From: Octopus bimaculoides | Lineage: Eukaryota | Length of the DNA: 64,000 nt | Reading direction: 5' to 3' | Assembly: GCF_001194135.2 (NCBI RefSeq) | Contig: NC_068991.1 | Span: forward strand, 67,179,729 to 67,243,728 | Shown: piece after piece, positions 24,301-64,000 of the stretch | Layout of the letters: the number at the start of each line of letters is the position of its first letter | How positions within the stretch are numbered: position 1 is the first letter of the stretch | Translations under genes and position numbers: made by a program | Notes under the pieces: generated by a model | Database searches by the model: none | The model's input: only the letters and a program-made list of their open reading frames with translations | What the model was told of the DNA's origin: nothing

Positions 24301-27300
24301 ACCTTCCTCTCTGTTCAACCATGAAATTTTCTTCTGTAGAGCCAATCAGATCCAGAGCATCTATATATTTATCTTGACAGATAAATATATGAGAGAGATC
24401 CTTGTGTGGTTCATAAAAGTCAGAAAATACCGTTTTAAACCAGGCATGAGGAGAAAAAAACTAATTTTAGTAAATTCTAATTTACTTACTTTCACACTTC
24501 AGTTGTATGATAAAATACAATCTGGCCTTCATTGATTTTCTTGGTCACATGGTAGGCCAGAGGCAACAGTGCTACATTAATTATTCAGTATATATTGTGT
24601 AATCATTGGTGTTACTACGGACTCAAATCAGGATCTAGAGCACTTACTGAACAATTTTCATGCTTGAACACCAGGAAAATGCTTGCGTCTTTAAAGGTGT
24701 TTTAGAAATAGACTGGGTAAGGAGTTACAGTTAAAATATTCATCTTGCTAAGATGATTGTTTAAAGATGTGTAAACATTCTAATATAATATAAAATAAAA
24801 TAAAATAAAGTCTCTGATGTGCTATGAGAAAAATATTTCAATGCTTATTTCTATTTCATTTCTTTATAGGAAATTGAGAGAGGTAAAATAGAAAAACGAT
24901 ATCTGAAGTAAGTACATTATAATTTTGGACTGATTATATATTTATAGAAAAAAAAATTCAAAGTTGAAAAATAGATTATTAAAATCAGGTTTGCAAAGAT
25001 TGTGGAGTTTCTAAATTAACATGTTGGAATGGGTTAAGGATCCTGGATAGTTAAAAGGGGAATAATTTCGCATTTTAACGAAAAGGACCTTTATTGGATT
25101 GTACTGTAAGATATTTCTCCAAGAAATATGTTATGATTATGTTAGGGACCTGAATTCATGTTAAATGTATGAGAATGTATACATGTCCATGTATCCGAGT
25201 GTGATCATTGCCAGAGCAGCTGTCTGGCTTCCGTGCCAGTGGCACGTAAATAGCACCATTTGAGTGTGATCATTACCAGTGTTGCCTTACTGGCATGTGA
25301 ACAAATATTCAAGCGAGGTCGTTGCCAGTGCCGCTGGACTGACTCCTGTGCAGGTGGCACATAAAATACACCATTTCGAGCGTGGCCGTTGCCGTTATCG
25401 CCTGACTGGCCTTTGTGCCGGTGGCACGTGAAAGCACCCACTACACTCTCGGAGGGGTTGGCATTAGGAAGGGCATCCAGCTGTAGAAACTCTGCCAGAT
25501 CAGACTGGAGCCTGGTGCAGCCATCTGGTTTCACCAGTCCTCAGTCCAACCCATGCTAGCATGGAAATCGGACATTAAATGATGATGATGTGTGCTGGAT
25601 ATAGGTTCAAATGTATGAGTGAGTGAGCATCAAAAGGTGAAATCAGCAAATCAGCATAAACTTGAAGAAACAGCTTTCTAAAAAATTCTTACTCTACTAG
25701 AGAAGGCCAGTGTACTCACAGCCTAATCTTGTCAGTGGAGCAGATGGAGGCATCAGTGGAAGAATCTACTGATATTGTTGGGTTTGTTTGTTCAGGTGGT
25801 GAGGGTTGATGCCAAGACTCAAAGTGAACCTCTTTTAGGCAGTCGATGCTGAACAAGTCTTCTTTGAAGATGAACAACAACAAGAAGAATAAGACGAATA
25901 GGAAGAACAAGAAAAGGTTGCTTACTGGTTGCTTTGATGTCACTTGTACAAGATGTTTGGTGGAAAACTGAAATCAGAGACCCCCAGCGAGACATCTGGT
26001 AGAAGATTGCCAGTCCAAAATAAAGTGTGGACGTTGTTTATGCAGAGACGAGAACTGTGCCTCTAGACCAGGGGTTTTCAAAGTTTTTGACTTGCGGACC
26101 CTTTTATATTTCAGGCTTTACCTTAGGGACCCCCCTTATAAACGCTTATGAAATTTATACATAAATATTTTCTTAAAATAACATATATTTTTACATTTAT
26201 TTATTTAACAGTATTTAACAAATAGGTTTATTGTCAATTAAAAAACACTTCCTAAGTCGATGCAAATGTTCCAAGAGTCCAAAAGGTTCCTGTGTGTGAA
26301 GGAAGCTTGCTTCCCAGCTACATGGTTTCAGGTTCAGTCCCACTGCGTGGCACCTTGGGCAAGTGTCTTTTGCTATAACCCCGGGCCGACTAAAGCTTTG
26401 TAATTGAATTTGGTAGGCAGAAGTTACTGCCATGTGTGTACATGTGTAAGTGCTTGTGCCACCTAACATATAAAGTGTGGCACAACACTGAACCTACTTT
26501 CCATTGTAACCAGTTACAATGGCAGTGGCACAATAGAGGTTTATATTGAGATGACCAAAAACAAACTGCACTTCAGGTTTTTATTATATAAACTTAACTT
26601 CTAGAAGTTCTAACAAGAACTAAGGGTCTTTCACTCCCTGTAGCTTACATGCTAGTTAACTCAAAGCTGGGGCCTTGACATGTGCTACTGTTCTGGGTGA
26701 GAGTAGACCTGAGAACAATAGTGGCTAAGAGGTGGTTCCATGCTCCTAAAAATCCTGGAGATAAGCACATATGTACATAATATAAACATACATGAGAAAA
26801 AACACCCAGAAATACAAGACAATATCTTGTAAGACTTTTCTTTCTATTTTGTGTTGTTAAGCTTTATATCTAATGATTTAAAAGTCAATATCAGCCAACT
26901 TTACTATAGCATACAGTGACATTTTTCTTGTGATGATGATGATGATATTGATGAATGTCAGCCTTTCTTTTCACAGAATCTTCACTAAAATCTTAGGCAT
27001 CACCATATATTACTCAACATTATTACAAAAGCAATGAGCAAAAGCCAAACTTTTAATATTGTCATTTTTTTTTGTGGTAGAAACTTAGTTCAAAAAGAAA
27101 ATAAGAGTTTGCAGTAATAAAGCAATAGTGTGTCTCTCTCATACATGCTGTTATATTTGGGAAGTTACACAACTCTCTGGTTCAATAAAAAGTATTTGTG
27201 TAACCATGAGAGATATTTTGTGGTACAACAGCACTAAGTTTAAATTTGTTTTCCTTCAAAGGTTACAAGAAACCATGAGATCCCTGCAACAGGAATTAGA

Positions 27301-31944: not shown

Positions 31945-34900
31945 CTGAAAAACAAATTACAATGATTTTTTATTAGAGTTAAACTAAATGGGGAAACTAT
32001 TGTACAATGGAATGATTAATCGCATATTTATTCTTAACACTTAAAAGCACCCAGTCCACACTGTAAAGTGGTTGGTGCTCAGAAGGGCATCCAGCTGTAA
32101 AAAACCTTTGCCAAAATTGACCCCACATGTGCTTTGTCACATAAAAAGCACTAAGTCCACTCTGCTGAATGGTTGGTGTTAGGAAGGGCATCGAAGCTGC
32201 CAAAACAGTCACAGAAGTCTGGTGCAGGGTTTGGCCTGGCCAGCTTTTGTGGTACCATCCCACCCATGCTAGCATGGAACACAGACGTTAAATGATGATG
32301 GTGATGACATCTAGGCAGGTTCAGAAGCAAAATATGCTAATCACAATAATGTATGTCATAGGAGAATGACTTCTTCCTTTTATGACAGTGTGTTCAATAC
32401 ACTCAGCTTATTGGCACAGCATTCTGGGACACTGGTGTTTTGACACACAGCATTTCATCAGCCAGAATCAGCTGAAACCCTAGGCCTAGACAAAGCTGCT
32501 GGCTTTGTTTATACTTTCAGATCTACAGACTTATAAAAAAAATTGTTATTTGAACACTGTACAGTGAGATCTGCAAAGATTAATCCCATATTTATTCCTG
32601 GCATGTCTAAGCAGGTTCAGACACAAAATATGCTGGTCATTGTAGTGTACATCATAGGAGGAGAATAACTTCTCCCTTTTATGATAACAGTGCCTTCTGT
32701 TGTATAAGGGTACCTTCAATTGGGAGTTGAGATATTGTTTCCGTTCAGGACAGTTAGGTAAAAAAAAATGGTGTGGTTGAGAAGCTTGCTTTCCAACCGT
32801 GTGACCTTGGATTCAGTCCTACTGTGGTGCACCTTGGGCAAGTCTTCTACTATAGCCCAGACTGACCAAAGCCTTGAGAGTGGATTTGGTAGACAGAAAC
32901 TGAAAGAAGCCCATCATATATTGTGTATGTATGTGTGTGTGTAAGTGTGTATGTACCCTTATGCAGATAAAGTTATGGTTGTAAATGACCATCATCTTAC
33001 AAATGAGGCTGTTCGTCATCACACGTGTGTGTCTTTGTCCTTCACCACCACCACCACCACTTGACAACTAGTGTTGGTGTGTTTACATCCCTGTAACTTA
33101 GCCGTTCTGCAAAAGACCCTGGTAGAATAAGNNNNNNNNNNTAGTGTTGGTGTGTTTACATCCCTGTAACTTAGCCGTTCTGCAAAAGACCCTGGTAGAA
33201 TAAGTACCAGGCTTTAAAAAAAAAAAAGCCTAAGGTTGATTCATTTCATTAAAAAATCCTTAATGGGGATGCCCCAGCATGGCCACAGTCTAATGACTGA
33301 AACTAGTAACAGAGATAAAATATAAAAGATATTTTAAGAGGTGAAATGATGAAGGACTGGGTTCGAGATCGGTCAGTAACACTGCAGCTCCACTGTTTTA
33401 GGGGAAGAATTTGAGACAACATGAATGAAAGAGCAGAGGTTTGTGAAAATAAATATAAAAAGTTATAAGAGTATTGACGAACAAATAAGAGACTCACTTT
33501 AGCAGCTGATCAGTTTCCCCATAATCATCAAGGTAGGGAGCTGTTTGAAAACAGCCTTTGTTCTGGCCAGCTAGCAAAAATATCTGACAATCACGTATTC
33601 TGCAAAGAAAGACCAAACAAAAAAATTTTTTTTTTTAAATAATGATCAGCAAACAATTCACAAAGGCAATTATCTATCATCATCATCGTTTAACATCCGC
33701 TTTCCATGCTAGCATGGGTTGGACGATTTGACTGAGGACTGGTGGACCAGGAGGCGACACCAGGCTCCAATCTGATCTGGCAGAATTTCTACAGCTGGAT
33801 GCCCTTCCTAACGCCAACCACTCCGAGAGTGTAGTGGGTGCTTTTACGTGCCACATGCACGAAGGCCAGTCAGGCGGTACTGGTAATAGCCATGCTCAAA
33901 ATAGTGTATTTTATGTGCCACCCGCACAAGAGCCAGTCTGATGGCACTGGCAACGACCTCGCTCGAATGTCTTTTCACGTGCCAGGAAGGCGACGCTGGT
34001 AACGATTATGCCCAAATGGTGCTATTTACATGCCACTGGCACGGAAGCCAGACAGCTGCTCTGGCAACGATCACGCTTGGATGGTGCTCTTAACGCTCCA
34101 CTGGCACAGGTGCCATCATGATTTCGCTTTCACTAGCCCGAGATGCCATCACAATTTCGCGTTCACTTAACATTACCATTATCAGTTTAATGTCACTTTT
34201 CTACATTGTTATAACGGCCAGGACAACTTTGTTAAACAGCATATGGTTGTTCCCATGAGTTCTGCATTATTGTACCTGTGATGTTTTGACTTCATCACCA
34301 ACAACTCTACTGCTTACAATGGCCTGGTTCTACCAGGAGCATTGTCCAGTGTCATTAATGTTGTCCATAATAGTGTGGTCATCATCCTAACTGCATTAAA
34401 CATGAGCTGACAAAGGAGCTTCTGCACAGTCTATTTACTAAAACTTAACACCCAAATTACTCTTCAATTATATTTTGCAGTCTTAGAAAAAATAACAAAA
34501 AAATTTTTTTAAAAAGACACTTGAAAATTTTAGTCCTAGATACATTGTGAACAAAAGACAGAATGGCTAGAATGTCTTTGATTATAAGTTTGCAAGAGCA
34601 GGTCTGACCTGGGATTAAATAATAATACCCAAATGTTTTCAGATTTCCCATTACCATTCAATATCGTGTATTTAGCAGACCAAACTTAATTCAGTCCACT
34701 ACAGAGAAGTAAACATGTCCCATAATCATACAGTTATTAGTCTATAATCAGACTGACACAGGGTTAATATACTGGTTTCATATTTTGGCACAAAGCCAGC
34801 AAGCTCAGGGAAAGGAGCAAGTCAATTACATCGACCCCAGTATGCAACTGGTACTTATTTTATCATCTCTGGAAGGATGAAAAACATAGTCAATCTCGGT

Positions 34901-37900
34901 GGAATTTGAACTCAAACGTAAAGATGAATGAAATACTGTAAAGCCCAGTGTGCTAATGATTCTGTCAGCTCACAGCCTTAAAGGGCTCATCTATTAAATT
35001 CACCGGCTTATCAAGCATACAATCGGACAGATTAGCATAAAATATAAATTCAATAACAATTGTGTGTGCGTATACAAGCCATATTTACCTGAGGAATATC
35101 CCAATACCAGCACCACAAACATGTGAGTGTGCAGTTGCTGCACCAACTAATTTTTTGTCCACTTCTACTTGACAGCAGTAGCTATGGGAACAGAGGACTT
35201 GACCACAGACAAGGCACATTGTTGGTACACGGCTCTCATCTCCAGATGACCGGGGACAGCTGTGGAAGGCGGGGAAAAAAAAAGATTATAAATAAACTGC
35301 ATAATATTAGAACTACAGAACAGTAAACAACCAACAACATCAATCAGTAAACAACAGTGAACGATTATTTCCAGCCTCTGGGTGGGATACGTTAATATTT
35401 AGCTCCAATGTTTTACAGATTGTTGCTTTCCAGACTCCCTCCCTGTTGAAACTTGTCCCAACACCAATTAGTTAATACCAGTTTTATGTTAGTGTTTAAT
35501 TCTTCAGCATTTAAACTGACCATATCCGGCCAAAAATATCCTACATGTTTCATGTTCAAACTGACCAGATCCAGCCTCTCACACCCACTCTACAATGTCA
35601 TTTGAACAGTAAACAATCACGTCATCAAAATCTCAAAGCTATGAGATAATGCATGATTAATTCAAACCAATGTGAATAAATAAGCATCACATTTGGCAGG
35701 GGAATCTGAACGCTAAAGGGCTGGATAAGTTGAAACACAAATCTTCTGCTATACATCTTGACATCTAAACAACTGAAACCCCAAATCAGCCATTGTTGGA
35801 TAAATGTATCTGAGGGTGTTTGGATAAATGTATCAGAGTATTTGTAATTACAGAAAAAGGAGTTTGAGCGGTTACTCTTGTATGTGTATGTGTGTGCCCC
35901 CATGCATGCACATATTTAGGAGGATATTTCAAAATAGATGGCAGATGTTATTAATTTATCTACTTTGTAAGGTTAGAAATGTATCAATATTGGCAATTAG
36001 ACTTACGTGTAACTTGAAACTTGATTCATTAGTTCACTGTAATCGTTAGGTAACTTGACCAAATGATTCAGTGGTAAAGGATATCTAATAATCTTCTGGT
36101 TACTTGCTGTGAAGTGGTCTTTGATGGATGGATGGCTGCACCACCTGTGAAAAGATACAAATTATGAAGAAACAACACATACATACATACATATATATAT
36201 ATTGTAGGTAAAGAGAAGTAGGCATGGTTATATGATTAAGAACTTCACTTCACAGCCTTGTGGCTTCATGATTGGTCCAACTGTGTAACATCTTGGACGT
36301 TTACCATAACCTCCAGTTGATTAATGCCTTGTGAATGGAATTGGTACACGAAAACCATACAGAAGCTTGTGTGTGTATATGTATAAAGGCATAGATTGAT
36401 AGGTAAAAGGTTGAGAAATACTGGTTTAGATTGATAGAACAGTGCATGCTTTAAAGTAAATATACACCAAACCATTGTCATGCACTAACTGCTGAACTCG
36501 GCTGAGATGACTGCCGTCAGTGCAACCTAGTTGCCTGGTAACAAACCGTTGTCGTGGGGTTAAGTTAGGGTATAAAGAAAAGACAGCTTATGCAAGTCAA
36601 GTGAAGCAGAAAAATGTATCTCACTCCAAATTCAAAAGAATGTGTATGACATTTTAATATCATCATCATCATTTAACGTCCGCTTTCCATGCTAGCATGG
36701 GTTGGACGATTTGACTGAGGACTGGTGAAACCGGATGGCAACACCAGGCTCCAGTCTGATTTGGCAGAGTTTCTACAGCTGGATGCCCTTCCTAACGCCA
36801 ACCACTCAGAGAGTGTAGTGGGTGCTTTTACGTGCCAGTCCGGCGGTACTGGCAACGGCCACGCTCAAATGGTGTTTTTTACGTGCCACCTGCACAGGAG
36901 TCAGTCCAATGTTTTGTTCACATGCCACCAGCACAAGTGCCAGTAAGGTGAAGCTGGAAACGATTGCGCTCAAATGGTGCTTTTTACGTGCCACCGGCAC
37001 AGGAGCGAGACCGCTGCTCTGGTAGCGATCCCGCTATTTAACAATTTTCAATAATCTAATTCAGGTTATTAATTGGGGAAAGCATGATTAGTATTACATA
37101 TCTTCATTAATTAGACATTTTGATATGAGTTTATAGAGGACCTAGTGTTAGAACAATGACATTTCTAAAAGGATTTATGTGAAAAAAGAAAAGCATTATT
37201 AAAAGAAAGATTTAACAAACCTAGCCATGAGTTCAGAAATAATATCTCCTTGATTTTCAAATAATGTAGTCAATTTTGAAGGGAGAGCTAAAAATCGACA
37301 AACAAATTCAAACTGGTTGCTGGAGTTCTCTGAAGAGAGAGAGAGAGAGAGATAAAAAAGTTGGGGTTTATAACTTCTTGGCCAGAAATAGTACAACTAT
37401 TAGTCTAATACAAATAAAACAAAATACTAAACTGACTATTTCATTTTTGTATTTGGTTTGCCAGATTCTTGATGTGAACTTATGTTGAAACATATTCTGC
37501 TGTATCTTGGGAGGGTCATAATGCCAATAATAAACACACACACACACAAGTATTATTTCACTTCTTTTACTATTATCATTATTAGTATGGTAGTGAGCTG
37601 GCAGAGTCATTAGCATGCCAGGCAAAATGGTCAACAGCATTTCATCCATCTTTATGTGCTGAGTTTAAATTCCACTTAGCCTTTCAAGGTCAATAGAATA
37701 AGTACTGATGAGCAACGGTGTCCATGTAATCCGCTTACCTTTCCTCAGAAAGTGCTAGCCTTGTGTCAAAATTTGAAATTATTATTATTTTTAGTCAATT
37801 GGTTAATATTATTATTATCAGTCAATTGGTTAATCATCTAACCAATTGACTAATCGATTGTTTGGTCAAAGTCCTTTTCTCACTATTTGTACTCTCATCA

Positions 37901-42304: not shown

Positions 42305-45300
42305 AAAAGAAAGAGATAAACATGCACACATACCTTGTGACTCTGGTTCATAGACAAGGAGAATCTGAACCAAGTGAGCAGTGAGAACCAATTGCAGGGC
42401 ATGTTGATCATTGAGGCTGCCTGTGGGGAACGTAGTAAGCAGTGAAGTTTGCCCCTCAGCATAGAGAGTTGGCAACGACATTACCAACACAGTTAAGTAG
42501 TGAAACATATCTAAGTCAAGAATGCAGGGTGGTTCATGTTTTTTCTCCAAACCATCAGGAATTAATGCTGAAAAACGAAAACAAGAAAATACCAATGTAA
42601 TGTTTCCCAAATGGTTGATCTAAAAAAATCAGAAAACGAGAATATAAAATGTAAAAGATTAAAAGATATATAATTCAAATATTAAAGGAACTTCCGAATC
42701 TCCCTGTCTTTGAATTTTTTGTTTTTATTCAATTAGTCTGATTAAATTAATTAATGTAGCTCTAAAGCTAGTTCATGGAGAACTCTAGTGGATTCCTGCT
42801 TTGCAATACATTCCTGATATATTTTGAGAAACAGAGTGCATAGTGTGTGTAACCGGTTACTTTCAGTTTCTGTCTACTAAATCCATTCACAAGGCTTTGG
42901 TTAACTTGGGAATGTAGAGGATATTTGTCCAAGGTGCCATGCAGTAGGACTGAACTTCAAACCACGATTGGTAAGCAAACTTCTCAATCATACAACCACG
43001 CCTGCATGCTAATATGTGTGTGTTTATTAAAATAAACAAGGGTTAAAGTTGCTTGACTACTGATCACATGGTTATAAATTTAGATTTTACTAGTCATTGT
43101 ATTGCTGTTGTTCTTCTGAGTAAAACACACAACTGTTTATTCCAGCTTTCTTGACAAAACCAGGCATTTCAGTCCCAACCCCTCCATCTTTTTTCAAAGA
43201 TGGTAAATGTAACATTATCCTGTATGTCTTTCCTTTTGAAGATAGTTGCATGTGATTTAAGAGAATTGGATCCTTTGAGTGATTAGCAGAGGCAAAACCA
43301 TTAGAAAGCCTCTACACAGTCGAGTTGGTTGAGCCGTTAGAAATAATACTTAAATTTCCATCAAATCACACCCTTCTTAGGAAAAAGGACACATAGAGTA
43401 AGGTAGTTTTGGATATCCTATGCCTTAAAAATGTTGTGATGGTCATGGCTTGAACGAGCTTCTCCAAATATAAACCACTGCCAAGAGACAGAAATCTTTC
43501 GTTGCCAACACAGGTAAACAGCTCTGAACTATATGTATTCAGGAGACAAAAACAGACAATTTCATTCAAGAAATGTACTCCCCACTACCACCACTACCAC
43601 TTAACCCTTTACCTACCAGTGATCTCATATGAGAACACTTAAAAATTACAAATTTCGTAATTATCTGTCCATATTTACACATATCTAACCTTTTTGCTAT
43701 ATCTACTAGGTATATTTCTCTGATATTCAAATGAGGTTTGCTAATTTTTCGCCCAATATCTCGCTTATTTCTATTTAAAATGTTATTTTGGAATGTTATT
43801 TTGAAATGTTATTTTGATCATTCCAGCGTGTTTCTAAGACTGTTTTATGCTAGAAATCAAAGTTTCATTAAAAAATTCCAGTAAATAGAATTATGGGAGG
43901 TAATGGGTNNNNNNNNNNNNNNNNNNNNNNNNNNNNNNNNNNNNNNNNNNNNNNNNNNNNNNNNNNNNNNNNNNNNNNNNNNNNNNNNNNNNNNNNNNNN
44001 NNNNNNNNNNNNNNNNNNNNNNNNNNNNNNNNNNNNNNNNNNNNNNNNNNNNNNNNNNNNNNNNNNNNNNNNNNNNNNNNNNNNNNNNNNNNNNNNNNNN
44101 NNNNNNNNNNNNNNNNNNNNNNNNNNNNNNNNNNNNNNNNNNNNNNNNNNNNNNNNNNNNNNNNNNNNNNNNNNNNNNNNNNNNNNNNNNNNNNNNNNNN
44201 NNNNNNNNNNNNNNNNNNNNNNNNNNNNNNNNNNNNNNNNNNNNNNNNNNNNNNNNNNNNNNNNNNNNNNNNNNNNNNNNNNNNNNNNNNNNNNNNNNNN
44301 NNNNNNNNNNNNNNNNNNNNNNNNNNNNNNNNNNTTGTGAATTGTTCTAGAAAAATATTTTGAGGGCTTTTTTGAAGTTTATTAACCCTTTGAGCCCTGA
44401 CCTCTTGAACCTTATTTTACCATATACCTGGCACTCCACTGGTGCTACAGTATAGAGGAAAACAAGCCATCCACCAGTAAACCGGCGTTACAAGCTCAAA
44501 GGGTTAACATTTAAAACAATTTTTTCTTTAAGCAATTTTTGAGATTTCTTTAAAAAAAAATTTTTTTTAATTCTAAAAAATTTTTCACCTTTGTTCTCAG
44601 TTTATCTTGTACTTAACAGTCTTTCAGTTTTAATCTATTCAGTTACAGTATTTCATCTGCTTCTTTTACCTTTCCAATCTCTCCTGCTAATGGCATTACC
44701 CTGTTGTCTTACTACACTATAGCTAACTGTACCAGCCTACCTTTCTTATACCATTGCATTGCAGGAGTTTCCACTCCAACTGAACTCGATAGCAAACAAC
44801 ATACACAATTGGGTACAAACAGGAAACTAAGTTGTGGAGAATAAAACATACTTTCAACCATCTATGTCATGATTTCTATGGTTGAAATTATAAAATTGAA
44901 ATGAATAAATTAAAATCTATTTTCCTAACATCACTTTATATTAAAACATAGCTGTAGTTAATTGTTCAAGTCTGGTGCCGTCACCGTTCAACATGAAGTC
45001 TATTGTATTCCAGCCGCCTCTACTTTCTCATTCATCTTTTAATTAGTCATATGATGTCTAGGCTCATTCCAATTTTTTTAATTTAACATAGTCTCTAGTC
45101 TAGATCTGATTCATTCATCTTTTAATTAATCCTTTTGTTACTATATTTGTAACTACAATATGTGTTGCAATTAAATTCTTAAATAATTGTAAATTTAGAT
45201 TGGTTTCATAAAGCATCATCATTTAATGGCAGTCTTCCATACTGGCATGGATCGGACAGTTTGACAGGAGCTGGCAAAAGCTAGAGGACTGAGTCAAGCT

Positions 45301-45455
45301 CGACTGTCTGTTTTGGTGAGACAAAGATTCTTTGAGAGTGGGATGTATTGGAGAAGGTGGCCCAGTGCCAAGTGATGAGAGGTTAGCGTTGGCAAAGGGA
45401 GAGAAACAGGTGTCTTGCTGCAAGGGAAAGAGAGAGAGAAGGTGGTCAAGAATGA

Positions 45456-45490
<35 letters not shown>

Positions 45491-48400
45491 CAAGAGAGAT
45501 GGTGGCAACATGCCAGGGTATACTCTCAAGGTATGGCATCATCATCATCATCATCATCGTTTAATGTCCACTTTCCATGCTAGCATGGGTTGCACGATTT
45601 GACTGAGGACTGGTGGACCAGATGGCTACATCAGGCTCCGATCTGATTTGGCAGAGTTTCTACAGCTGGATGCCCTTCCTAACGCCAACCACTCAGAGAA
45701 TATAAATATGCTGGTAAAGCATTACTAAAGGTGTATGAATAGCAAGTTCACATGAATGCATAGAGTGGGGAAGGAATGCAGTGAGTGGTGAAAACTGGGT
45801 GTGTGTGTGTGTGTATATATATATATAGAGAGAGAGAGAGGGGGTGGGGACAACAGGATAGCAATGATACAGCGAGCAGGGCAGTGATGACAGAATTGGG
45901 CTGCAGGAGTGAAGAAGAAGAGGTAAAGAGATGTAGTTTGGTTTATTGTGAAAAATTTATGTTACATGTGGGTGGAATAAGACAGCACTTCCAGTACTCA
46001 GTTTCACTGAGGTGGGTGGATCTCCTCATGAACCCCATACTGCCAGACATCTTGATCCATTGTCATCTTCTCTGTGAGGCCCACCTTTGTTGATTTATTA
46101 AAGTGGTGTGTTCAAAGAGAACTTAGATTCTTACATAAATCTACTTTGGAATTACTCTAACTACAGGTAAACACAGATAAAAACCTGTAAAATATAAAGT
46201 TATTTAAATATTACCATATTAAAATGAGTTATTAACCAATGTTATATTACATATATCTCTAAGGCTGTGAGCTGGTAGAATCGTTAGCACGCCGGGCGAA
46301 ATGCTTAGCAGTATTTCTCTTGTTGCTACATTCTGAGTTCAAGTTCTATCGAGGTCAACTTTGCTTTTCATCCTTTTGGGGCCAATAAATTAAGTACCAG
46401 TTGAGTACTGGGGTCAATGTAATCAACTTAACCCCTCACCACAAACTTCAGGCCTTGTGCTTATAGCAGAAAGGATTATATTACATATCTACCTAAATGC
46501 TCACCATTATATTTACTGCAAAAATGCTTAAATTTCATACTGTCTTCCTTTGTTTATAAATTGTGTAACAATTAACCTTTGCCGTTATCATATGGGACAC
46601 TTGGAATAAATGAAAATAAAAAGCCAATGGGTTGTGAGTCGTAGAAAAGACAGTTGGTTCCTTTGAAAAATTTTAGAAGAGAAATATTCTACAAAGTGTT
46701 TAGCTTCAACATTATTGAAGTAGTTGTATACTGTCAACTTAATGTGACAGTTCCCTGAAGGGAATAATATTACTGTTGGTTAGATCTAGGAAGCTGCACC
46801 GCTTCCTGTCGGCCTTGACACATTTTCTGTGTCCTTATGTTTACAAGGGGGAGACAAGCACCTCCACCCAGCTCCCCCTTGTAAACATAAGGACACAGAA
46901 AATGTGTCAAGGCCGACAGGAAGCAGTGCAGCTTCCTAGGTCTAACCAACAGTAGTATTATTCCCTTCAGAGGACTGTCACATTAAGTTGACAGCATACA
47001 ACAACTACATCGTATCACTACTGCATAAATCTCTCAGAGAGATTTAGAAAGGTATTATTTCTGAATTCAACATTATTGTTTTTACAACTGCTGCCCAACA
47101 AGAAAATTAAGACATCCAATTTGGTCCCCGTATTATGCTAGACGCATTTTTTTTTTTTTTATAATTCACTGCAAAATCAGTATTACTAAAATTTTGCTGC
47201 AAGATCACTATTACTAAATGTGAAGCTTACATAATTTAAGAAAACAAAAAGATAGAATGTTATAGAAATACAGAAAAATTTAGAAAAAACAGATTGCCAA
47301 AAAATTTAGAAATCATAAAATTCATGGTGTGAAAATGCTAGAAAAACCAGGTTATCTTTAATGCAGCAACAAGATTTACATCAACATCCAATATACTGCT
47401 GATAGAATACCCAATTATTAATACACAAGTGCCTTTTCATTGCATGGCAATTACATTACTGAGTGTAATAAATGGGAGAGGGTAAAAAGTTATTTTACCC
47501 TTAATTTATATAGCAATAAGATGGAGGGGATCAAGAGTTGGTATTCATCAACTTATAGACATTATATTGTGTCTATTTGTTTATTTTTTGGAGGACAATT
47601 GTAGCGGTGTACATACATGTATAACATATTATGCTTTACATATATAAAAATGACTGGCATCCGTGTTAGTGGAGTGCTAAGAGCACCATCCGAGGGTGAT
47701 CGTTGCTAGAGCAGCTGACTGGCTTCCGTGCTGGTGGCACATAAAAAGCACCATTTGCGCGTGATCATTACCAACGTCGCCTTACTGGCACTTGTACCGG
47801 TGGCACGTGAAAAAATATTCGAGCGAGGTCGTTGCCAGTGCCGCTGGACTAGCTCCTGTGCAGATGGCACGTAAAAAACACCATTTGGGCGTGGTCATTA
47901 CCAGTACCGCCTGACTGGCCCTCATGCCACATGTAAAAGCACCCACTACACTCTCAGAGTGGTTGGTGTTAGGAAGGGCATCCAGCTGTAGAAACTCTGC
48001 CAGATCAGATTGGAGCCTGGTGCAGCCATCTGGTTCGCGAGTCCTCAGTCAAATCGTCCAACCCATGCCAGCATGGATAGTGGACGTTAAACGGTGATGA
48101 TTTTAATTTAAATATGAAAAAGTAAATCCAAGCCTTTTTAGTATCTTATGACCATAAGCAGTTTAGTAATCAAAACGATAGATATATTGTTTATAATCTA
48201 GATATAATTTATTCATTATTTTAATTAAACATTTTTAGTCTCATTGTAATTTTTTCTTTCTTTTATGGTCTCTAGCATAGACTTTTTTTCTTTTACAAAT
48301 TAGATAAACTCACTACAATTCCTGTGTTAATAGTTCACATTTAAATAGATAGTTTTGGTAGCCGAGAGCTTAATATACTTACAGTATATACATCTGTAGC

Positions 48401-51400
48401 AAACTTTTTCATCATTTCCCTCATGCTCTCTGAAAAGTGGCCACTATAAAACAAAATAACTCACATTAGGCATTAGTATTACTGAATTCTCAAAGATGTG
48501 CTGAATTAATTTAGGTCTGTAGCAGATTATGATATAACTGTGGAGGCGCAATGGCCCAGTGGTTAGGGCAGCGGACTCGCGGTTTCGATTCCCAGACCGG
48601 GTGTTGTGAGTGTTTATTGAGCGAAAACACCTAAAGCTCCACGAGGCTCCGGCAGGGGATGGTGGCGAACCCTGCTGTACTCTTTCACCACAACTTTCTC
48701 TCTGTTTCTGTTGTACCTGTATTTCAAAGGGTCAGCCTTGTCACACTGTGTCACGCTGAATATCCCCGAGAACTACGTTAAGGGTACATGTGTCTGTGGA
48801 GTGCTCAGCCACTTGCACGTTAATTTCACAAGCAGGCTGTTCCGTTGATTGGATCAACTGGAACCCTCGACGTCATAAGCGACGGAGTGCCAACAACAAC
48901 AACAATGATATAACTGAATAAACCTCAGTATATTTCTGGTACTTATCTAATTGATTCTGGTTAATTTGAAATCTAAAGCATAAAAGGATGAGACTAAAAT
49001 ATCATGAGCACAGACTAGTTTTTACACATAACGACATTCTGAGAATAATTTATTATGTGAGAACATGGTGAAATGCAATGCAATTAAACGGATGAACTGC
49101 CAAGAAATGTCTTACCTATTGTCATCATAAACATAATTCCATAACAGAGTGAAGTTCTTGGCAACACTTTCAGCCATTAGTTTTGTTATCGTGGAAATAG
49201 GACAAGGTTGGAACAGTAAGCTCTCATCTACAATGGGAAATATATAAAAGGTCTTGATAAACAACAGAATTACAGATAAAATACAAGTTTTATTTACAAG
49301 CAACATCTAGAAGAAATAGTTCTAATTATAAACATTGGAAAGATGAAAACAACAAAGACCTAGGTAGGGTATGAATTCTGAATATAACCAAAACCAATAC
49401 AAGACATTTTGTTTGAGACTAACAATTCTTTTAGCCACCACCCTAAAATAAATTGAAATCATTAAGCGTTTTAAAGATTTTTGATATAATGCCTGGTTAT
49501 AGTTTATTTATAGAGAAAATCTGATGAATGAATTAACTGATAAGATTTTCAGTATAAAACAAAAACATAATTGCCTGGCAATCAATATATATGTGGTTCA
49601 AATCCTCAAATCCTGTCAAAGGGCTTGTTTGCATTTCACTGCCTGAAGTTGTTTATAATGTCTAATAAAATATTAGTTGTGGGAGAAAACTTAGTGTAGT
49701 CAAATGAAAAGACATACAAAAATATTTTAATATGGATTTTCAAGGCTGAAGACATTTAAAAATATAAATAAGATAAACACAGAGAACAAGAAAAAAATTT
49801 CTCAACCTTCAGACTCTTTATCAACAGCAGCTTTGACACTGGCTTGCACAGTCTTTTGGATGCCATCTAACCAATCATTGAAGCTGAGATCTACTGCCTT
49901 CTGTTGGTCACTGGAATACAAACCAAAGCAAAGATATGGGACTTATGTAAACAGTGTCAATTAAAAAGGAAATATTTTATAATCAAATATTAAAAAAAAA
50001 ACGTATCGTTAGTGAAAATAACTTTACTCTTACACCATTGGTGTATCTTGATTTTACATAATACCATTTTCCAAAATGGTTTCTTTTCATTCTTCTATCT
50101 TTATGTGCATCTTTAGCAAAGATCTGTGAAGGCGCATGGCTCAGTGGTTAGAGCGTTGAGCTTACGATTGTGAGGTTGTGAGTTTGAATCCCGGACTGGG
50201 CTGTGTGTTGTGTTCTTGAGCAAGACACTTTATTTCACATTGCCCCAGTTCACTCAGCTATAGAAATGAGTTGCGACGTCAGAGGTGCCAAGGTGTATCG
50301 GCTTTTGCCTTTCCCTTGGATAACACTGGTGGCGTGGAGAGGGGGAGGCCGGTATGCATGGGCGACTGCTGGTCTTCTATAAACAAACTTGCCCAGACTT
50401 GTGCCTGGGATTTAACAAGAGAAAGAAGTACATTATGTAATGTCCTTTTATTTTTTTGTCAGGCAGAAAGATGTGATTCAAGGGATATTTGGCTGCTATG
50501 ACTAGCAGATCATAGACTCTTTGTTTATTCAAAATCTGTAGTGATTCATTCTCTTGTATGAAATCAGAAGTTTAAATTACATCACACAATCTCTCTCTCT
50601 ATCTCTCGAGGTGGTAGAGAGAGAGAGAGAAAAAAAAAGGCCAAGTTTATAAACTAAACTACAAACAGCAACTAATAATCATTGTTAACTTACATGTCAC
50701 ATCCTGTAGCAACTGTCCTTAATGTGCTCAACGGTGGTAACATAGGAATCACAGTATTGCTAATTGCTCCACATAGGGGACACAAAAATTCTAACTTTTC
50801 AATGTTGTAACTACAGGTATTTCGGTATCTGAAAGGTCTGCGACGTTCTTTTGCTGCAATGGCATCAAAATATCTACAAGAGAAAGGAACAAACAACAGT
50901 AATATATCTCTCTTTATAAGGGATTTAGAAAATAATTTACTAAATGGCTTTAAATTGTATCTGAAGCAATAAATTTGGGTTACAGGAACAAGCAGAGTTA
51001 TGTTCCTTGCTAAGGGGTACAACACAATAATGTTCTATGATACCTTAATTCACATTAATTGGTACTCTTACCAGAGTTGCATTTGGCACGACTTTGTTTA
51101 CATTCGAATAAATCGTTTCTGCTACTTTGAGTTCAATCCTCAACTCACACTGGCAGAAAAGGTCCCTAATTTTACTGCTGGTAAGTAGCTTGCCAACCAC
51201 ATGTGTTTGTGTGTCTGTGATTGTCCCCCCAACATCGCTTGACAACCGATGCTGGTGTGTTTATGTCCCTGTAACTTAGCGGTTCGGCAAAAGAGACCGA
51301 TAGAATAAGTACTAGGCTTACAAAGAATAAGTCCTGGGGTCGATTTGCTCGACTAAAGGCGGTGCTCCAGCATGGCCACAGTCAAAAGACTGAAACAAGT

Positions 51401-52306
51401 AAATGAGTAAAGAGTATGATTAAATGGTTTCAATAAAAGTTATTTACAAGTCCCTCGGTGCATGTACAATAGAGACAGTGATGGCATGGTTGAATTTGAA
51501 CTCGTGATCAAATTGTGTAGATTTGAACCTTAACCACGTTCATGTAAAAATATATAAAAATATATTATAGAAACTATTGAATATTTCAAAAGCGAATCAC
51601 CTTTGCCAACAGTCAGCATGCATCACATGACCACAAGAGCTGGTGTGAGTTCCACAAAAAAGGTCTGAAGACATAAATAAAGGATCTTCATCTTCGTTGT
51701 TTATGTGTTTGCCTCTTGATTGAGATAAGACAGAAGACCTGAAATTGAGAAAATTATAACAATATAAACACACATAAAACCAAAATTACAAAAAAAAAAA
51801 AAATCTAAGTATGGTTAAGTATTTTAATATTCCACAATTATTTCAAAAATGATTTTCAATTATTTGATATATAAAAAAAAGAAACAAATTAATTAAATTA
51901 ATGACAATCTTGTCAACCTCAGCGATATAGAATGCATTAACCTATCTGAAAGCCCCAATCTGTTCAAATTCAGTGCCCTTAGGATGTTACAAGATCGAAT
52001 GTACAGTGCAGTCTAACATTTAAACCTGGGGGTCAGCAACCATATTTTTTGTAATAGTTCACTTTTGTTTTCTTTAATATCTGCCCATTGCACACATGTA
52101 TATCAATCATATCATATATCTTTTCTTAACATCCTTAGGCGCAGGAGTGGCTGTGTGGTAAGTAGCTTGCTTACCAATCACATGGTTCCGGGTTCATTCC
52201 CACTGAGTGGCACCTTGAGTAAGTGTCTTCTACTATAGCCTCAGGCCCACCAAAGCCTTGTGAATGGATTTGGTAGATGGAAACTGAAAGAAGCCTGTTG
52301 TATATA

Positions 52307-52379
<73 letters not shown>

Positions 52380-55300
52380 TTGTGTGTCTGTGTTTGTCCC
52401 CCCAACATCGCTTGACAACCGATGCTGGTGTGTTTACATTCCCGTAACTTAGCGGTTCGGCAAGAGACTGATAGAATAAGTACTAGGCTTTCAAAGAATA
52501 AGTCCTGGGGTCGATTTGCTCGACTAAAGGCGGTGCTCCAGCATGGCCACAGTCAAATGACTGAAACAAGTAAAAGAGTAAAAGAGTAATGAAGTTATTA
52601 ACCGAGAGATATTTATATTACAAAAATCAGTACAGACGTACGCTTACCTTTGTACAAGGGCTGAAAGAACCATTACACGTGCATTGTAAGAAATCTCTTG
52701 GTCTTCTTGACACAGAATACACACAGCTTTAATGGGGACTACGTTGTTGGTGCTAGTTTGTCCACAACCCAATGCAACAGGGAAAGGAGTAGATGTAAGT
52801 TCACTGGAAAAACAAAAAACACTACACCCAATAAATTTAACAAATTAAAATAACAACTGAATGTACAAAACTACTTAGAGAGACTCTTTTACCAATTTCT
52901 ACCAAATGGACTAAATCTATTTTTAATATCTGCTTGACTGGTAGTCTAGTAATTCATCAATTAAGTACAACATTTTCAAATGGTCTATTCGCTGAATTAA
53001 TAATCTTGAAGGATAAACTCTCTTCCAATGCTTAATTTTAACATTCATGTAGAATATCACAAGTTTTACATACTTCCTGTATCTTGTGACTTAACTGCAC
53101 AAGGAGTTTGATGCAGGGAGCCTGGTTATGCATCTGAATATGGCTTCTAGTAGAACCATGTATGACTTCGGCATTATTTGGATGCACAAATTCTTACAGG
53201 ACTTATTCTAAAACTTAGCTAAGGCATACAAGCAGTAGACTTTCAAAATACTCAAAGACAAGCCAAAATATTATAGCAGGGAAAAGAAGTTACAAAGAGA
53301 GGAACAGCATGATAGATGCAATTTTTTTCAAATTGCTTCAACAAAGAACATGAAATATTTTCCACACGAAAACCAAAAGCATGTTATAGACATTTTGCAA
53401 CATTAACACAAATCCTAGAGACATAGTTTCAGCTCTTCCTCTTCTCTAATAGTTCCTGCTCTTCTAAACTGGCAAACTGCATGCCATCTAAAGCACCGGC
53501 TTGTGCCTTTCTGTCTTACCCTCCAAACCTCACAATCAACACTTGTCAAACCTTTCTTTTCTACAACTGTAGTCTTTGCTGTTTCTACTGGCATCAACCA
53601 ACAATAATTCAAGTTGTGACCCCCAACCAATCTGGGAAGGGTTTATAAAAAGTAATAGACAAGCACTGCTTCTCCCTTATGATTAAACCGTAATAGGAAG
53701 ACATAGGTGCTTTTGAACGATTTACTCAATCATCATCATTTAACATCCGTTGTCTATGCTGGCAAGTTGGAGGCTGCACCAGATGCCAGTCTGGTTTAGC
53801 AGGGTTTCTATGGCTGGTTGCTCTTCCTAACACCAAACACTTTACAGAGTGTGCTGGATGCTGGCACCACACAGGCACTTTTACGTGTCGCCACACAGGT
53901 GCATTTATGATTCACTGCACAGGTGCTTTTACATGTTGCTGCATGGGTGCGTTTATATGTCGCTGCATGGCCGCTTTACACAACTACAAGGATTAGTCTT
54001 GTCTTAATCCTTCTGCTACGGGGTACAGGTCTTCTTGAGTACAGCCAGGTGCCAGCTATCTTGATCCTTTGTTATCTCGCTTGAAAGGTTCAGCTTCCTG
54101 AGGTCATGCTTCAGTACTTCATCCCAGGTCTTTCTGGGTCTCCCACTTCAACTTGTTCTATCCCCTTCATGGAGCTGTCAGCATCCCTAAGTGAATAATT
54201 ACTACCCCAAAGGCAATAACTAGTAAAGTTGCCCTCCAAAGAGCAGAACACAAAGCACCAAGCTAGCCAATATAACTATCACCAACTACACCACCTCTAC
54301 CATTGTACAAGTATAAAAATAGCAAAACTCAACCTCAAATCCATGTCTGACCAAGCTGAGGTCAGGCCGGATGTTGCCATCTCACAGAGAGAAGGATTGT
54401 CTTGAATAAAGCTTCGTTGCATTGCAGACAGCTGTGACATAATCCGTTGCCGTCGTTTAGCCGCCAACTCGGCCTTCTTCTTCTTCTCCTGCTCCCGTTT
54501 AACATCATAAGTACTGCTCAGATTGTTTATACTGGAAATACTTTCAAATTCATTCTCCATTTTCCTCACAGCAGCAAATTTCTGCAAAACAATGAATAAA
54601 TAAAGGATTCAGCCACCTGTCAGTTTACAACTCATAAGTAGTTAGAATAGAAGCATATATTGCATGTAATGGTTATAGTTCTGTACTCAAGTGTCTTTTA
54701 CAGGTTTTAGTCAACTGATAAAATCCCAATCGCCAACCACTCCGAGAGTGTAGTGGGTGCTTTTACATGCCACCGGCATGAAGGCCAGTCAGGAGGTACT
54801 GGCAACGGCCACGCTCAAAATGGTGTATTTTACGTGCCACCTGCACAGGAGCCAGTCCAGCGGCACTGGCAATCTTGCTCGAATGTCTTTACACGTGCCA
54901 GATCACAGAACCTAAACAAAATACTACAAGGTATTTTTATCCAGCATTTTACCAAGTTTATCATTTGCCTACTGTATAATAGATATTTTGTTCCTCCAGG
55001 TTCAAAGCCTTATACAATTTAATCATTCAATTTTAAGGATTAAAGTAAACTTGCAAATATTTAGCAGAAGAATACATATTAATATGTATACAAACATATT
55101 AGTCTTTAATACTTATGCCACTATATACTTCAAGTAAGTTTGAAAAAAAAATTTGGAAGGATTTAAGTAAAATACCTAAATTTTTCATTTATTGGTATAT
55201 TAATCTGATATTAGTAACGTAACTAAAAAAAAACAATTACATATATTCATCATCATCACCATCATCGTTTAACGTCTGTTTTCCATGCTGGCATGGGTTG

Positions 55301-58300
55301 GACGGTTTGACTGAGGTCTGGAGAGCCAGCAGCTTCACCAGGCTCCAATCTGATCTGGTAATGTTTCTACAGCTAGATGCCTTTCCTAATGCCAACCACT
55401 CCAAGTGTGTAGTGGGTGCTTTTTTAGGAGCCAATCAGCTGGACCTGGCATCAATCATGTTTGGATGGTGCTTTTTACGTGCCACCAGCACAAGATTTTG
55501 AATTGGTTTTATAAAATACAAAAAGAGGTGGTCTTATATGGGTTGGTATCAAAAAGGTTCAAAAGGTGTAAACTATTAATCCATAACAGAAAAAGTTGGC
55601 TCATTTCAGGGAAAAATGTTTTAATAGCATGTCAATTTGTTCTAGACGGTAAAAATTAGAATGGTTATTCTACTCACATTAAGAACCCATTTGAGGAGCT
55701 TGCTCTGATATTCCTGAGTAAGATTCTCACTGCCAACAACACTATGTAATAACTTGAGAATATTCTGACCATCTGGAATAAAAATAAAAGACTTCATTAA
55801 AAATACTGCAAACTAGAAGAATCAGAGGTAAAAAACATGTAATTACTATATTAACAGAGGCATAAAAGCTAAGTCTGGTTTAACCAGCTTACACACACAC
55901 ACAAATTTCTCATTACGTCACAAAAAAATAAAAACAAATTTGGAATACCTTTTGTAGCTTTTGCAAGAAATTCAAAAGGCTCGTTGTTTTCATAGGCTGC
56001 CTTCTGTTCGTGGAGAGCCAGTCCAATTAGATGCACTACCTGAGTAAAAATGGATAGCGAAAAATGTATAACCACAGTAACAATAGAAAAAAGCAGTAAG
56101 GAGTAAAGACAAAGCTACACAAAGCAAACTGATATATTGCTAATAGGGGCCAACAGAAAAACCCTACATAATTTTTCTGACTTGCTAAATACATTAGCCA
56201 AAGTTTTCTCAAATCATACCTTAACATCTTAAAAACAGTATACATTGAGTAATTTAGTCCTAGATGCACTATCTGAATAAAAGGTGAGATAGTTACAACC
56301 AGAATATTTATGCCTGGTAACTGTGCCGCCACTGCCATCATCATCATAATTTAAACTTTGCTTGCCATGCTAGTGTGGGTTGGATGGTTGGACAGGAGCT
56401 GGTAAAACTGGGGTACCATTGTCTGTTTTGACATGGTTTCTATGGCTGGATGTCCTCCCTAATGCCAACCACTTTACAGAGTGTATGGGGTACTTTTTAC
56501 ATGAAACCATCACCAGATGCTTTTCACGTGGCACCATCGCCAGTGCTTTTCACGTGGTACCATCACCAGGTGCTTTTTACATGGCGCCAGCACCAGTGCT
56601 TTTTACGTGGCACCATCACCAGGTGCTTTTTATGTGGCACCATCACCAGGTGCTTTTCACGTGGCACCATCACCAGGTGTTTTTCACGTGGCACCATCAC
56701 CAGGTGTTTTTTACATGGCGCCAGCACCAGTGCTTTTTACGTGGCACCATCACCAGGTGCTTTTTACGTGACACCATCATCAGGTGCTTTTTATGTGCCT
56801 CATATACAAACAATTGTGTTCTTAATCGACAACCTCATATCCATTGCTGACATTTACATAAAAGGCAATGTTAAATAGTAATACATACCCTTTCAAATTG
56901 AGTCTCGGACCATGATCTGGAGCGTTCAGCAGCTGTTCGAGACAGTACAATTGTCATTATATGGATCATTACATCACAACTCAAAACATTCCGTACTCCA
57001 GCAAATAATTTACAGAACCGAGGAGGGGCTGGTGGTGGTAAAGCTGTTGAGAGAAGGTAAAACAAGGTAAGTTGGCAGATTCCTTTACATGAAAGTTCAC
57101 ACAAACACAGTTAATTCTAAAACTATGCTATCACTATTAATTTCTTTCACTGACTTGAAGCAACATGTTTTGTAGAAGAGTACAGATAGTTATATCAACC
57201 CAAGTACTTGACTGGTACTTTATTTTATCAACCCTGAAAGGATAAAAGGCAAGGTTGAACCAAATAGGATTTAAATTTAGTTTACCTCGATCTTCTCCAG
57301 CTTGCTTCTTTTTCTTCATTTGACTTTCTTCAGACTGCAAGAAATATATAAAGATCATTATTAAGATGGCCATCAATATTGTTGAAAAGGTTGAGTAAGA
57401 CTTTAGAAAGTGTGTTTGTTCTACAGCAAGCATTATATTGATGCCAGTGATAATAAAATAAATGATAATGCTTAGTAATATAATAACTGATTGTCAAAGT
57501 AGTTAAATAATTAATAAATAAGTGTTCAATGACTAACGCTGAGGCCTGGTTTTTGTTATTTGTAGATAAAAGACAAATCAATTTCCTGAGAGGATCTCAG
57601 TATATTTCACATAAGAATTATAAATAACCTGTTTTAGTATTTCTAACAGGTGAAATGAAGCAATAGAATTGAATGAACAGACAAAATACACAACTATACA
57701 TCGTTAATAGATTTGAACTTCAGTTAATGCTCTAACCACCTGTAATATAGAATTCAGTGTGTGTTTCCAGAGACATAAAGTCTGATGGAGACTAGCAACA
57801 TATCCACCTGGTAACAATCTCACTATGCAGTAATTATACATCTATGATCGTTTTAACCCTTTCATGGTCATGCTTCAAATGAAATGAACTCCTTATGATT
57901 CTGAAGTGATTTTTGTAGAATAATTAAGAATTTGAAGGTATTTAGAAAAATAACATTGTCCATCATTAATCAGATGATGGAACGTAACAAAAGATTCTAA
58001 CATAAAATTATAACGGGTTTAAATTTACATACTCTTATTCTTTTTACTTATTTCAGTCATTTGACTGCGGCCATGCTGGAGCACTGCCTTAATAGTCGAG
58101 CAAATCGACCCCAGAGCCTATTCTTTGTAAGCCTAGTACTTATTCTATCGGTCTCTTTTGCCGAACTGCTAAGTTACAGGGACGTTAACACACCAGCATC
58201 GGTTGTCAAGCGATGCTGGGGGGACAAACAGACATACACACATATATATATATATACATATACAACGGGCTTCTTCCAGTTTCCGTCTACCAAATCCACT

Positions 58301-61300
58301 CACAAGGCTTTGGTCAGCCTGAGGCTATAGTAGAAGACACTTGCCCATGGTGCCACATAATGGGACTGAACCCAGAACCATGTGGCTGGTAAGCAAGCTA
58401 CTTACCACACAGCCACTCCTGCACCATAAATACATTTTAAAAGAAATTTGTATCATAGAATCAGAGTTTTCATTTGAGTTGGTGTCAAAAGGGTTAAAGA
58501 CGCCTACATTTCAATACAGAGGCAGATAAACCCTTCATTCTTGTAACATTAGAGATTTGTAAACAGAAACAATCTGGCATTTGGGTTATGAGATCGTGCT
58601 GTGGACAGTTGAACTGCAACTTTACACACAATGAGTTGGAACACTGAACAAAATAGAAATAATAAGCAGTACTTCTACAATACAATGAATGAGTATACAT
58701 AACACTTACTTTAGATTGCTCTGACCTGCTATAGTGATAGAAATAGGGATTGTATTGCTCACAATACTCTGGTTTTAGCTCATAGTGTCCTTTGCCTCCA
58801 ACTTGACTTTTCCTGAAATGATGGAAACATTTGAATTAAAAAAACATGCTTACAAATTCATCAATATCAAGGTCTATATATTTCCTTATGCTAGCTCAAG
58901 TTAGATAGATGTATTGTACAAGCTCTCATTGTTCAGCTTAGACTACCATTACTATGTGAAGCCCAACATCCTGAGATCTCATATCAGCAGTGTTCGCTTT
59001 CGTGACTTTGTCTTCTTTTGCTGTAAGGCACTCTGCACTGACAACTCAAATCAATATCAGAACAGTTATTTCTCCAACACTTTGGTAAATGTTTGAAGTC
59101 CAGCTGCTCCCCCCGGCTTAGAGGGATTTGAACACAGAGCACAGTGATTTAGAACAACTACCATGAACTAATCTGTCCAGTGCCAATTCACCATCTTTAA
59201 GAATTCATAGTAATACTCAATATTTCTCTCTGGTTCACATACAGACACACACACTATTCAGTAATAATTCCTGGATTAATTTCAAAGTTATTGAGGCACA
59301 AGAATGGCACTGTGGTTAAAAAGTTCACTTCACAACCACATGGTGCCAGATTCACACACACTCCGTGATATTTTAGAAAAGTATCTTCTTTTAGTCTCTG
59401 CTTGACCAATAACCAGTGACTGGAAGTTGGTGGACAGAAACAGTGGGAAAGCCTGAAAGCGGCAAGTTGGCAGAAACGTTAGCACGCTGGGCGAAATGCT
59501 TAGCGATATTTCGTCTGCCGTTACGTTCTGAGTTCAAATTCCGCTGAGATCGACCTTGCCTTTCATCCTTTCAGGGTCGATAAATTAAGTACCAGTTACG
59601 CACTGGGGTCGATGTAATCGACTTAATCTCTCTGTCTGTCCTTGTTTGTCCCCTCTATGTTTAGCTCCTTGTGGGCAATAAAGAAATAAGAAACAGTGGG
59701 AAAGCCTGATGTGTTTATGACAACACCACCATTAGCCAAAAACCAAATCTTGTGTCAGAGAAATCTATAAAGTAAGTCCCCAACTGAAAGAAAAACTATG
59801 GGTGACACAATCAACTAAAACCCTTGAAAGTGGTACCCCAACATAACTGAAAATAGTAAAATAGTATTTAGTGAATAATGTCAAAAGGATCCCTAAAGTG
59901 TAGCCCGAGATGGAGACAAAAATTAAACATTCACATTTCAGTATGGGATCAGACAACACAAAATAAGAGATGAAAAAAAATATCTTACTTAAAATTTGCG
60001 ACTTCATTCACCACAAGTTCAATTCCAGTCTCATGATTCCACTGAAATAATTATTATCATCGTCAATAATCTGCATAAGTTAGTAAAATTAAACAAATAA
60101 ATTAGAAATCTGTAGTAGAAATGATGTTTGGCAGTTTGAACCAGACCTACCTCGTTAAACTTAAGTGCCAAAGCCCCAACAACCCATATTAGACCTTCCT
60201 TTGCCATTGTTCCAGTCATACATGTTAGGTACACAAATTAAAGTTATTTCTGCCGAAACAGGTTTAGCAGGTCTTTAAAAAATTCAATTTCTTCACAGTT
60301 TAACTTTCAAATGAAAATACCATTATCAACTATGACGTTACAAATGACAAACATTTAGAGTTGAAAATTTATTTCTTCCACAAGTTTTTGAACTAGAAAT
60401 TAAAAAAAAAATAAAAATTGACCTGGATTATTAGAGTCAGACTAGGAAACGTTAAACAGTTTCTGTTATTATACTGATATTACACTGCTTTTGTAGTATA
60501 GGTTAATAATTAAAAGTTGCACTTACATCTTCGGGTAGGGCTTTTACAAGTTCACTGTGTGCCATTGGAGTAATGCACAACTGGTGGATAATTTCCCTCT
60601 TGACAACGTCTTTGTGGGTTACTTGCCCCACACCAACAGTGTAACGTTCACCTAAAGAAAAAAAAAAAAAGAAAAAAAAGGAGGGGAGGAGTCAAACAAT
60701 AGTTTATATTAAGTCCAATATATTTTTTTTAACATTTGTTTCCACATGCTAACCTGTACCCCAAGAGTTCTGGAGGTTTCTAATAATCACTGCCAGAGCA
60801 GCGGTTTTACTCCCATGCCGGAGGCACGTAAAAAGCACCATTTGAGCGCGACTGTTTCCAGTTTCGCCTTACTGGCACTTGTGCTGGTGGCATGCGAACA
60901 AAACATTGGACTGACTCCTGTGTAGGTGGCACATAAAAAACACCATTGGAGCGTGGCCGTTGCCAGTACCGCCGGACTGGCCCCCGTGCTAGTGGCATGT
61001 AAAAAGCACCCACTACACTCTCGGAGTGGTTGGCGTTAGGAAGGGCATCCAGCTGTAGAAACTCTGCCAGATCAGATTGGAGTCTGGTGTAGCCATCCGC
61101 TTTGCCAGTCCCCAGTCAAATCATCCAACCCATGCTAGCATGGAAAGCGGACGTTAAATGATGATGAAATTATAAAGTTCTTAAACTGTCAAACACAGGA
61201 AACTGATATAACTACATCTCAGATTAAAACAACGGTTATAGACAAAATTTGAACAATTAGTTTGGAATCTTAAGCCCATCTCAAAACTCCAATTAAATAA

Positions 61301-63689: not shown

Positions 63690-63735
63690 CTGAAAGAGAA
63701 ACAAGAGAGAAAATTAATAACATACAAAATATTTA

Positions 63736-63955: not shown

Positions 63956-64000
63956 TTAACACAAAATATTAAACAGGTAATAAATATCATTAATTCTTTT

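Follow-up and report, generated by a model that had tools for sequence, protein, structure and literature searches.

The window (the whole 64,000-nucleotide stretch of Octopus bimaculoides DNA analyzed here) carries a UBR1/2 gene, whose exons were located by tblastn with full-length orthologues on the - strand from 63707 down to a stop codon at 31806. Human UBR2 (PDB 9wbv) matches this gene at an E-value of 2.5e-89 and UBR1 at 1.1e-73, and the region around the exon considered below corresponds to Pfam family PRT6_C (E 3.9e-73). A coiled-coil protein gene, convergent with the UBR gene, has exons on the + strand at 2117-5957 and 13342-14278; a search of these exons against Pfam gave no family above the cut-off. 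Between the two genes, long ORFs on the - strand at 21504-22256, with a zinc-finger-like N-terminus (PF18658, below the cut-off) and a transposase-like continuation, are possibly the remnant of a hAT/BED-type element. The ORF at 233-697 (+) is by its appearance a transposase fragment. An inverted duplicate of part of one UBR exon and its adjoining intron lies farther upstream in the UBR gene. The features that bear on it are as follows.

44737-44791, + strand: inverted copy of the 3' part of a UBR exon; 55 nt aligned with 13 differences, encoding 18 residues
44792-44923, + strand: inverted copy of the first ~125 nt of the downstream intron, with GC in place of the donor GT
38871-38731, - strand: parent exon, UBR1/2 orthologue, 46 residues within Pfam PRT6_C, of which only 38803-38731 is represented in the copy
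38791-38774, - strand: codons for RCAALM, 18 nt without counterpart in the copy, where the gap sits between 44748 and 44749
38761, - strand: A38761, first A of an ACA (Thr) codon, predicted to lie opposite C (the complement of G44761)
38730-38607, - strand: co-duplicated segment of the parent intron, beginning at the 5' splice site
42329-42583, - strand: UBR exon between the copy and the parent exon (tblastn)
48374-48445, - strand: nearest recognizable UBR exon upstream of the copy in the transcript (tblastn)
43909-44334, no strand: assembly N gap, 400 nt from the copy, with ~70 conserved UBR residues probably inside

The + strand at 44737-44787 repeats, inverted and in frame, the sense exon sequence found on the - strand at 38803-38792 and 38773-38735. 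These 51 aligned nucleotides contain 10 differences, of which 8 are at third codon positions, 5 are G:U-compatible and one places a C opposite A38761. The letters and coordinates of both sequences, the 18 nt missing from the copy and the counts of differences are all as given in the first-pass annotation of this DNA. That annotation ended the match at 44787, but the homology goes on through the end of the exon at 38731 and the donor GT at 38730-38729, so that + 44737-44923 corresponds to - 38803-38607 and takes in the 5' splice site together with ~125 nt of the intron that follows. The duplicated unit is an inverted segment of 187 nt (~190) that spans an exon-intron junction of the UBR1/2 gene. 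A blastn search of the whole 64-kb window with the copy region gave an E-value of 6e-18 and the pairwise comparison of copy with parent 2e-23, which rules out chance similarity; even the exon peptide alone found the copy by tblastn (E 5e-5). Across all 55 aligned bases of the exon part, 42 are identical (76%), and the 13 differences are distributed 4/0/9 over codon positions 1/2/3. At its very end the exon reads CAAG where the copy has GATA, a difference at three of four positions. The intron part has 95 identities in 118 aligned bases (80.5%), with an additional 20 gap columns; the alignment columns taken up by indels number 38. Shuffle tests detected no similarity past either end of the 187-nt segment (p 0.38 and 0.19). 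Copy and parent are the only two copies of the segment in the window, no other UBR exon was found twice there by tblastn, and the sequences flanking the copy did not match any repeat in the window.

Because the homology crosses the splice site into the intron, the copy is the product of an inverted duplication at the DNA level and is neither a retrocopy nor an exon-only element. Birth by inverted duplication was the best-supported part of the earlier reading and is reinforced by the co-duplicated intron. A better match to a retrocopy had been named as an outcome that would count against that reading; a processed retrocopy or pseudogene fragment is ruled out, since the copy contains ~125 nt of intron. 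A tandem, mutually exclusive exon was also considered and rejected: the copy is on the opposite strand, has a GC donor, and has lost six invariant codons together with the 5' 68 nt of the exon.

The antisense orientation of the copy in the UBR pre-mRNA, likewise claimed earlier, is real, because the gap-free contig 44335-64000 that holds the copy also holds 15 UBR exon blocks, all on the opposite strand. The assembly has nine gaps within 64 kb. About 70 conserved residues (1321-1391 of orthologue P0053, the '...PILAWHSCAFTIHSTEQLL...' region) are absent from the assembled sequence between the exons at 48374-48445 and 42329-42583, and the gap at 43909-44334 probably hides one more UBR exon. The copy therefore lies two introns upstream of the parent exon, or probably three because the missing residues probably sit in this gap, and is ~6 kb away. 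The closest match to a neighboring UBR exon was a genomic ORF with 93% identity. In a homologous-protein search for other cephalopods, the exon peptide had no matches and the C-terminal 162 amino acids matched only short fragments, among which the nearest named organisms were fish.

All results on structure presented here are thermodynamic predictions. RNAduplex gave -174 kcal/mol for the two arms, and the ddG of cofolding was -99 kcal/mol, as against -9 +/- 3 for shuffled arms. When the 6.45-kb stretch of pre-mRNA from 45000 to 38550 was folded globally, with gaps left unpaired, the minimum free energy (MFE) structure retained 151 bp between the copy and the exon-intron junction, in 19 helices of which the longest has 19 bp. 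Pairing of the copy with the exon, and the folding of exon and intron segment suggested as a check on it, are thus borne out in silico. The 18 nt encoding RCAALM form a small hairpin of their own that is looped out of the predicted duplex. A38761, predicted opposite C as had been proposed, has an A as 5' neighbor and, together with A38762 (A:A), would make up a 2x2 internal loop with a 13-bp helix on either side. Half of the exonic adenosines in the segment (7/14) fall in predicted A-U pairs, including A38772, which has a U on either side. The 5' splice site (38731/38730) is located inside a predicted 13-bp helix, 38731-38719, that includes four G:U pairs, and the exon at 42329-42583 is inside the loop of the predicted fold. 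Copy and parent have the makeup of an inverted-repeat ADAR substrate, namely two inverted copies of more than 100 nt in one transcript that form an imperfect predicted duplex. Intronic complementarity around the target adenosine is present as well, covering 42/55 exon bases and 95/118 intron bases. The geometry of the predicted duplex is compatible with ADAR action.

The divergence between copy and parent was then examined for signs of constraint. The exon part is kept no better than the intron part (76% against 80.5% identity; Fisher p 0.55). At codon positions 1 and 2 there are 4 differences in 37 (10.8%), which is about the share expected of one unconstrained lineage given a total neutral divergence of ~20-30%. 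The shortage of changes at these positions had been read as a hint of constraint, a suggestion that neither comparison sustains. An accompanying bias toward wobble-compatible changes does not reach significance (13 of 19 transitions, p 0.08). RCAALM falls within a motif, FLRCxALxxH, that is present in human UBR1, UBR2 and every orthologue representative examined; because its residues are invariant, the 18-nt gap is a deletion in the copy, one that leaves the reading frame intact. The copy also lacks the 5' 68 nt of the exon, and the donor sequence, GTAAAT in the gene, is GCAAAC in the copy. The residue encoded by the ACA codon is Thr in 26/34 orthologue representatives and Ala in 0/34, so that the Ala of the copy (GCA) is derived. 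Derived residues thus occupy conserved positions of the copy in two cases, Thr->Ala and Gln->Asp, and the A:C mismatch at 38761 is one of 36 mismatches and stems from an A-to-G change in the copy. The idea of restorative editing, in which a G-to-A change in the exon would be corrected to an ancestral base kept in the copy, was rejected, since Thr/ACA is the ancestral state. Of the 18 third codon positions, 9 differ, compared with 19.5% of sites in the co-duplicated intron (p 0.013), and in simulations of a neutral copy and an exon accepting only synonymous changes, the probability of at least 9 third-position differences was 0.001-0.07, so a simple neutral model does not account for the excess. 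It may reflect small numbers, or an intron divergence that is under-counted by local alignment. A search of Rfam found no family on either arm. Judged from its sequence, the copy shows no sign of constraint and looks like an exon-intron junction duplicate in decay.

Long duplexes are commonplace in the UBR transcript, where 80 inverted pairs have a length of 40 nt or more. Of these, the 25 longest (88-239 nt) derive from SINE-like families and other repeats; 24 of them are 80-97% complementary, and each of the 25 exceeds the exon-copy pair in strength. What sets the exon-copy pair apart is only its contact with a coding exon. The UBR intron that houses the copy also contains a near-perfect hairpin repeat, 46716-46853 with 46872-47009, with 138-nt arms, 94% complementary, and an 18-nt spacer. 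By its sequence this hairpin resembles a foldback or MITE-type element, and as local dsRNA it far surpasses the duplex of exon and copy. A SINE-like family of ~155-170 nt has at least 10 copies in the window with 84-97% identity, many of them within UBR introns. The copies sit in both orientations and make numerous strong inverted pairs. A second repeat family, of ~240 nt, includes a tandem pair at 38494-38319 and 38261-38045, which begins 113 nt past the downstream end of the duplicated intron segment. The partner of this repeat at 46261-46436 would make a helix nested outside the exon-copy helix. A larger duplication that included the pair 38494-38319 / 46261-46436 was considered and rejected, because the repeat is a multi-copy family with an identical element boundary in nine copies; shared boundaries of this kind mark the copies as independent insertions. 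Copies of the two families are located at the following coordinates.

SINE-like family: 45538-45704, 47947-48101, 61002-61167, 63387-63554, 36644-36817
SINE-like family, continued: 33676-33857, 15054-15208, 17310-17477, 25447-25590, 55247-55401
~240-nt family, further copies: 46261-46478, 59455-59693, 63733-63956, 34811-34979, 19587-19760, 11896-12104, 8094-8291

Several explanations of the copy can be weighed against these observations. It is unlikely, in our estimation, that the copy is a long-range editing-complementary sequence (ECS) under selection that guides ADAR to A38761 (Thr->Ala) and to neighboring adenosines. The imperfect duplex of 151 bp predicted even in the 6.45-kb global fold is in keeping with such a role, as are the good ADAR geometry at A38761, which faces C in a small loop with a 13-bp helix on either side and is preceded by an A, and the majority of wobble-compatible transitions (13/19). 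In mammals, site-selective editing can be driven by intronic or distant elements (PMC1920255, PMC3479170, PMC5654063), and distant intronic elements in particular promote editing (PMC3479170, PMC5654063). However, no mark of constraint is seen on the copy; the A:C mismatch is merely one among 36 and was produced by a change in the copy, and in no orthologue representative is the Thr replaced by Ala. Position argues against it as well, since the copy is not in the intron flanking the parent exon: with the exon at 42329-42583, and probably another in the gap, at least one and probably two exons separate the arms, and because of these intervening exons the intron that holds the copy may be removed before the parent exon is transcribed. 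In coleoids, the level of editing correlates with local mRNA structure over ~100 nt (PMC7703385), and squid ADAR2 is partly cytoplasmic and edits mature mRNAs, which can be edited in the absence of introns (PMC7192619); thus intronic partners are not required. No UBR entry was found among the editing sites in the published supplementary tables examined. A role for the copy in splicing, in which the helix buries the 5' splice site or loops out one or more exons and so leads to retention, skipping or back-splicing, we regard as quite improbable. The 5' splice site does lie within a predicted 13-bp helix and the exon 42329-42583 within the loop, and conserved long-range pairings have been tied to pre-mRNA processing in human genes (PMC8052449), but the absence of constraint on the copy weighs against this role too, and the helix over the splice site is weak, with G:U at 4 of its 13 pairs.

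Other explanations concern the source of the copy rather than its effect. An origin from a UBR paralogue whose intron is homologous, or from a multi-copy element carrying a captured junction, could account for third-position differences (50%) that exceed those of the intron, as in old coding paralogues, and for the fact that the 18-nt deletion is in frame; mobile repeats are also dense in the window. Such a source is nevertheless doubtful. The intron homology starts exactly at the splice junction and is ~80% identical, which points to this locus or a very close relative; no other UBR exon is doubled in the window and the flanks of the copy match no repeat there, and the missing invariant residues imply that the copy has not been a working exon recently. 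It should be noted that the copy is only 400 nt from an N gap, in an assembly with nine gaps in 64 kb, and might be a misplaced or misoriented fragment beside the gap at 43909-44334. We consider such an assembly artefact very improbable, as 15 UBR exon blocks, all opposite in strand to the copy, occupy the same gap-free contig (44335-64000), and an identity of 76-80% with indels is not that of a mis-assembled read of the parent exon.

The explanation that we favor, and believe to be probable, is that the copy arose as an inverted micro-duplication, is neutral and decaying, and may incidentally serve as an ADAR substrate. By this account, ~190 nt of genomic DNA, comprising the 3' part of this C-terminal exon, the 5' splice site and ~125 nt of intron, were duplicated in reverse orientation into an upstream intron of the same gene, and the copy has drifted as non-coding DNA ever since. 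Its transcript would be complementary to the parent exon-intron junction simply by origin. If the intron survives long enough, an imperfect duplex of ~150 bp could form. ADAR would meet this duplex as an incidental substrate of an ordinary kind, and the 5' splice site of the exon would be buried in it. We take the copy to be neutral and regard any editing that it might bring about as a side effect; nothing in the sequence points to a selected function. Some observations fit this account less well: the excess of third-position differences, though its numbers are small, the in-frame length of the 18-nt deletion, and the persistence of the helix in the global MFE structure with a good ADAR geometry at the A:C mismatch, which leave some probability for a function. 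There is only a slim chance that the copy is a newborn, unrefined editing or splicing element that already pairs in vivo and draws ADAR to the Thr codon and the 5' splice site. If this were so, the locus would offer a snapshot, in a gene for a UBR1/2 N-recognin, of how exon-complementary sequences originate by duplication. If the exon is edited, it would illustrate one route to a new ADAR substrate, with a duplicative origin still visible through the co-duplicated intron. A plausible candidate substrate that bears the marks of neutral decay, the locus is chiefly of value as a cheap test case for whether old inverted duplicates fold over 6 kb. To our knowledge, the origin of editing-complementary sequences is poorly documented, and few of the structures that underlie the tens of thousands of cephalopod recoding sites are known, the general view being that they are local.

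In the kainate receptors GluR5/6, the ECS is distant from the edited site. The copy resembles the ECSs of the GRIA2 (GluA2) Q/R and R/G sites in being an intronic, imperfect inverted repeat of an exon with predicted pairing in the pre-mRNA and a helix that would include or abut the 5' splice site; as at the R/G site, the target A is predicted opposite C (PMC1920255). Classical ECSs occupy an intron that directly borders the exon being edited (PMC1920255). ECSs of the GRIA2 type are also conserved across species and proven by mutagenesis, whereas the UBR copy is two or three introns and ~6 kb away and shows no constraint. A second likeness is with the conserved long-range complementary regions of pre-mRNAs that affect splicing or back-splicing, which likewise pair over kilobases, with exons enclosed between the two segments and a splice site covered (PMC8052449); that class is defined by conservation, while the UBR copy points to decay. 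Nearby long stems can recruit ADAR (PMC5654063, PMC3479170, PMC9989829), and with editing inducer elements and inverted pairs of the Alu/SINE type, which are promiscuous ADAR substrates, the exon-copy pair shares a predicted imperfect duplex of more than 100 bp between two inverted copies in a single transcript. It differs from them in that its arms, within the window, do not look like copies of a mobile element but like a unique duplicate of an exon-intron junction, so that one arm is coding.
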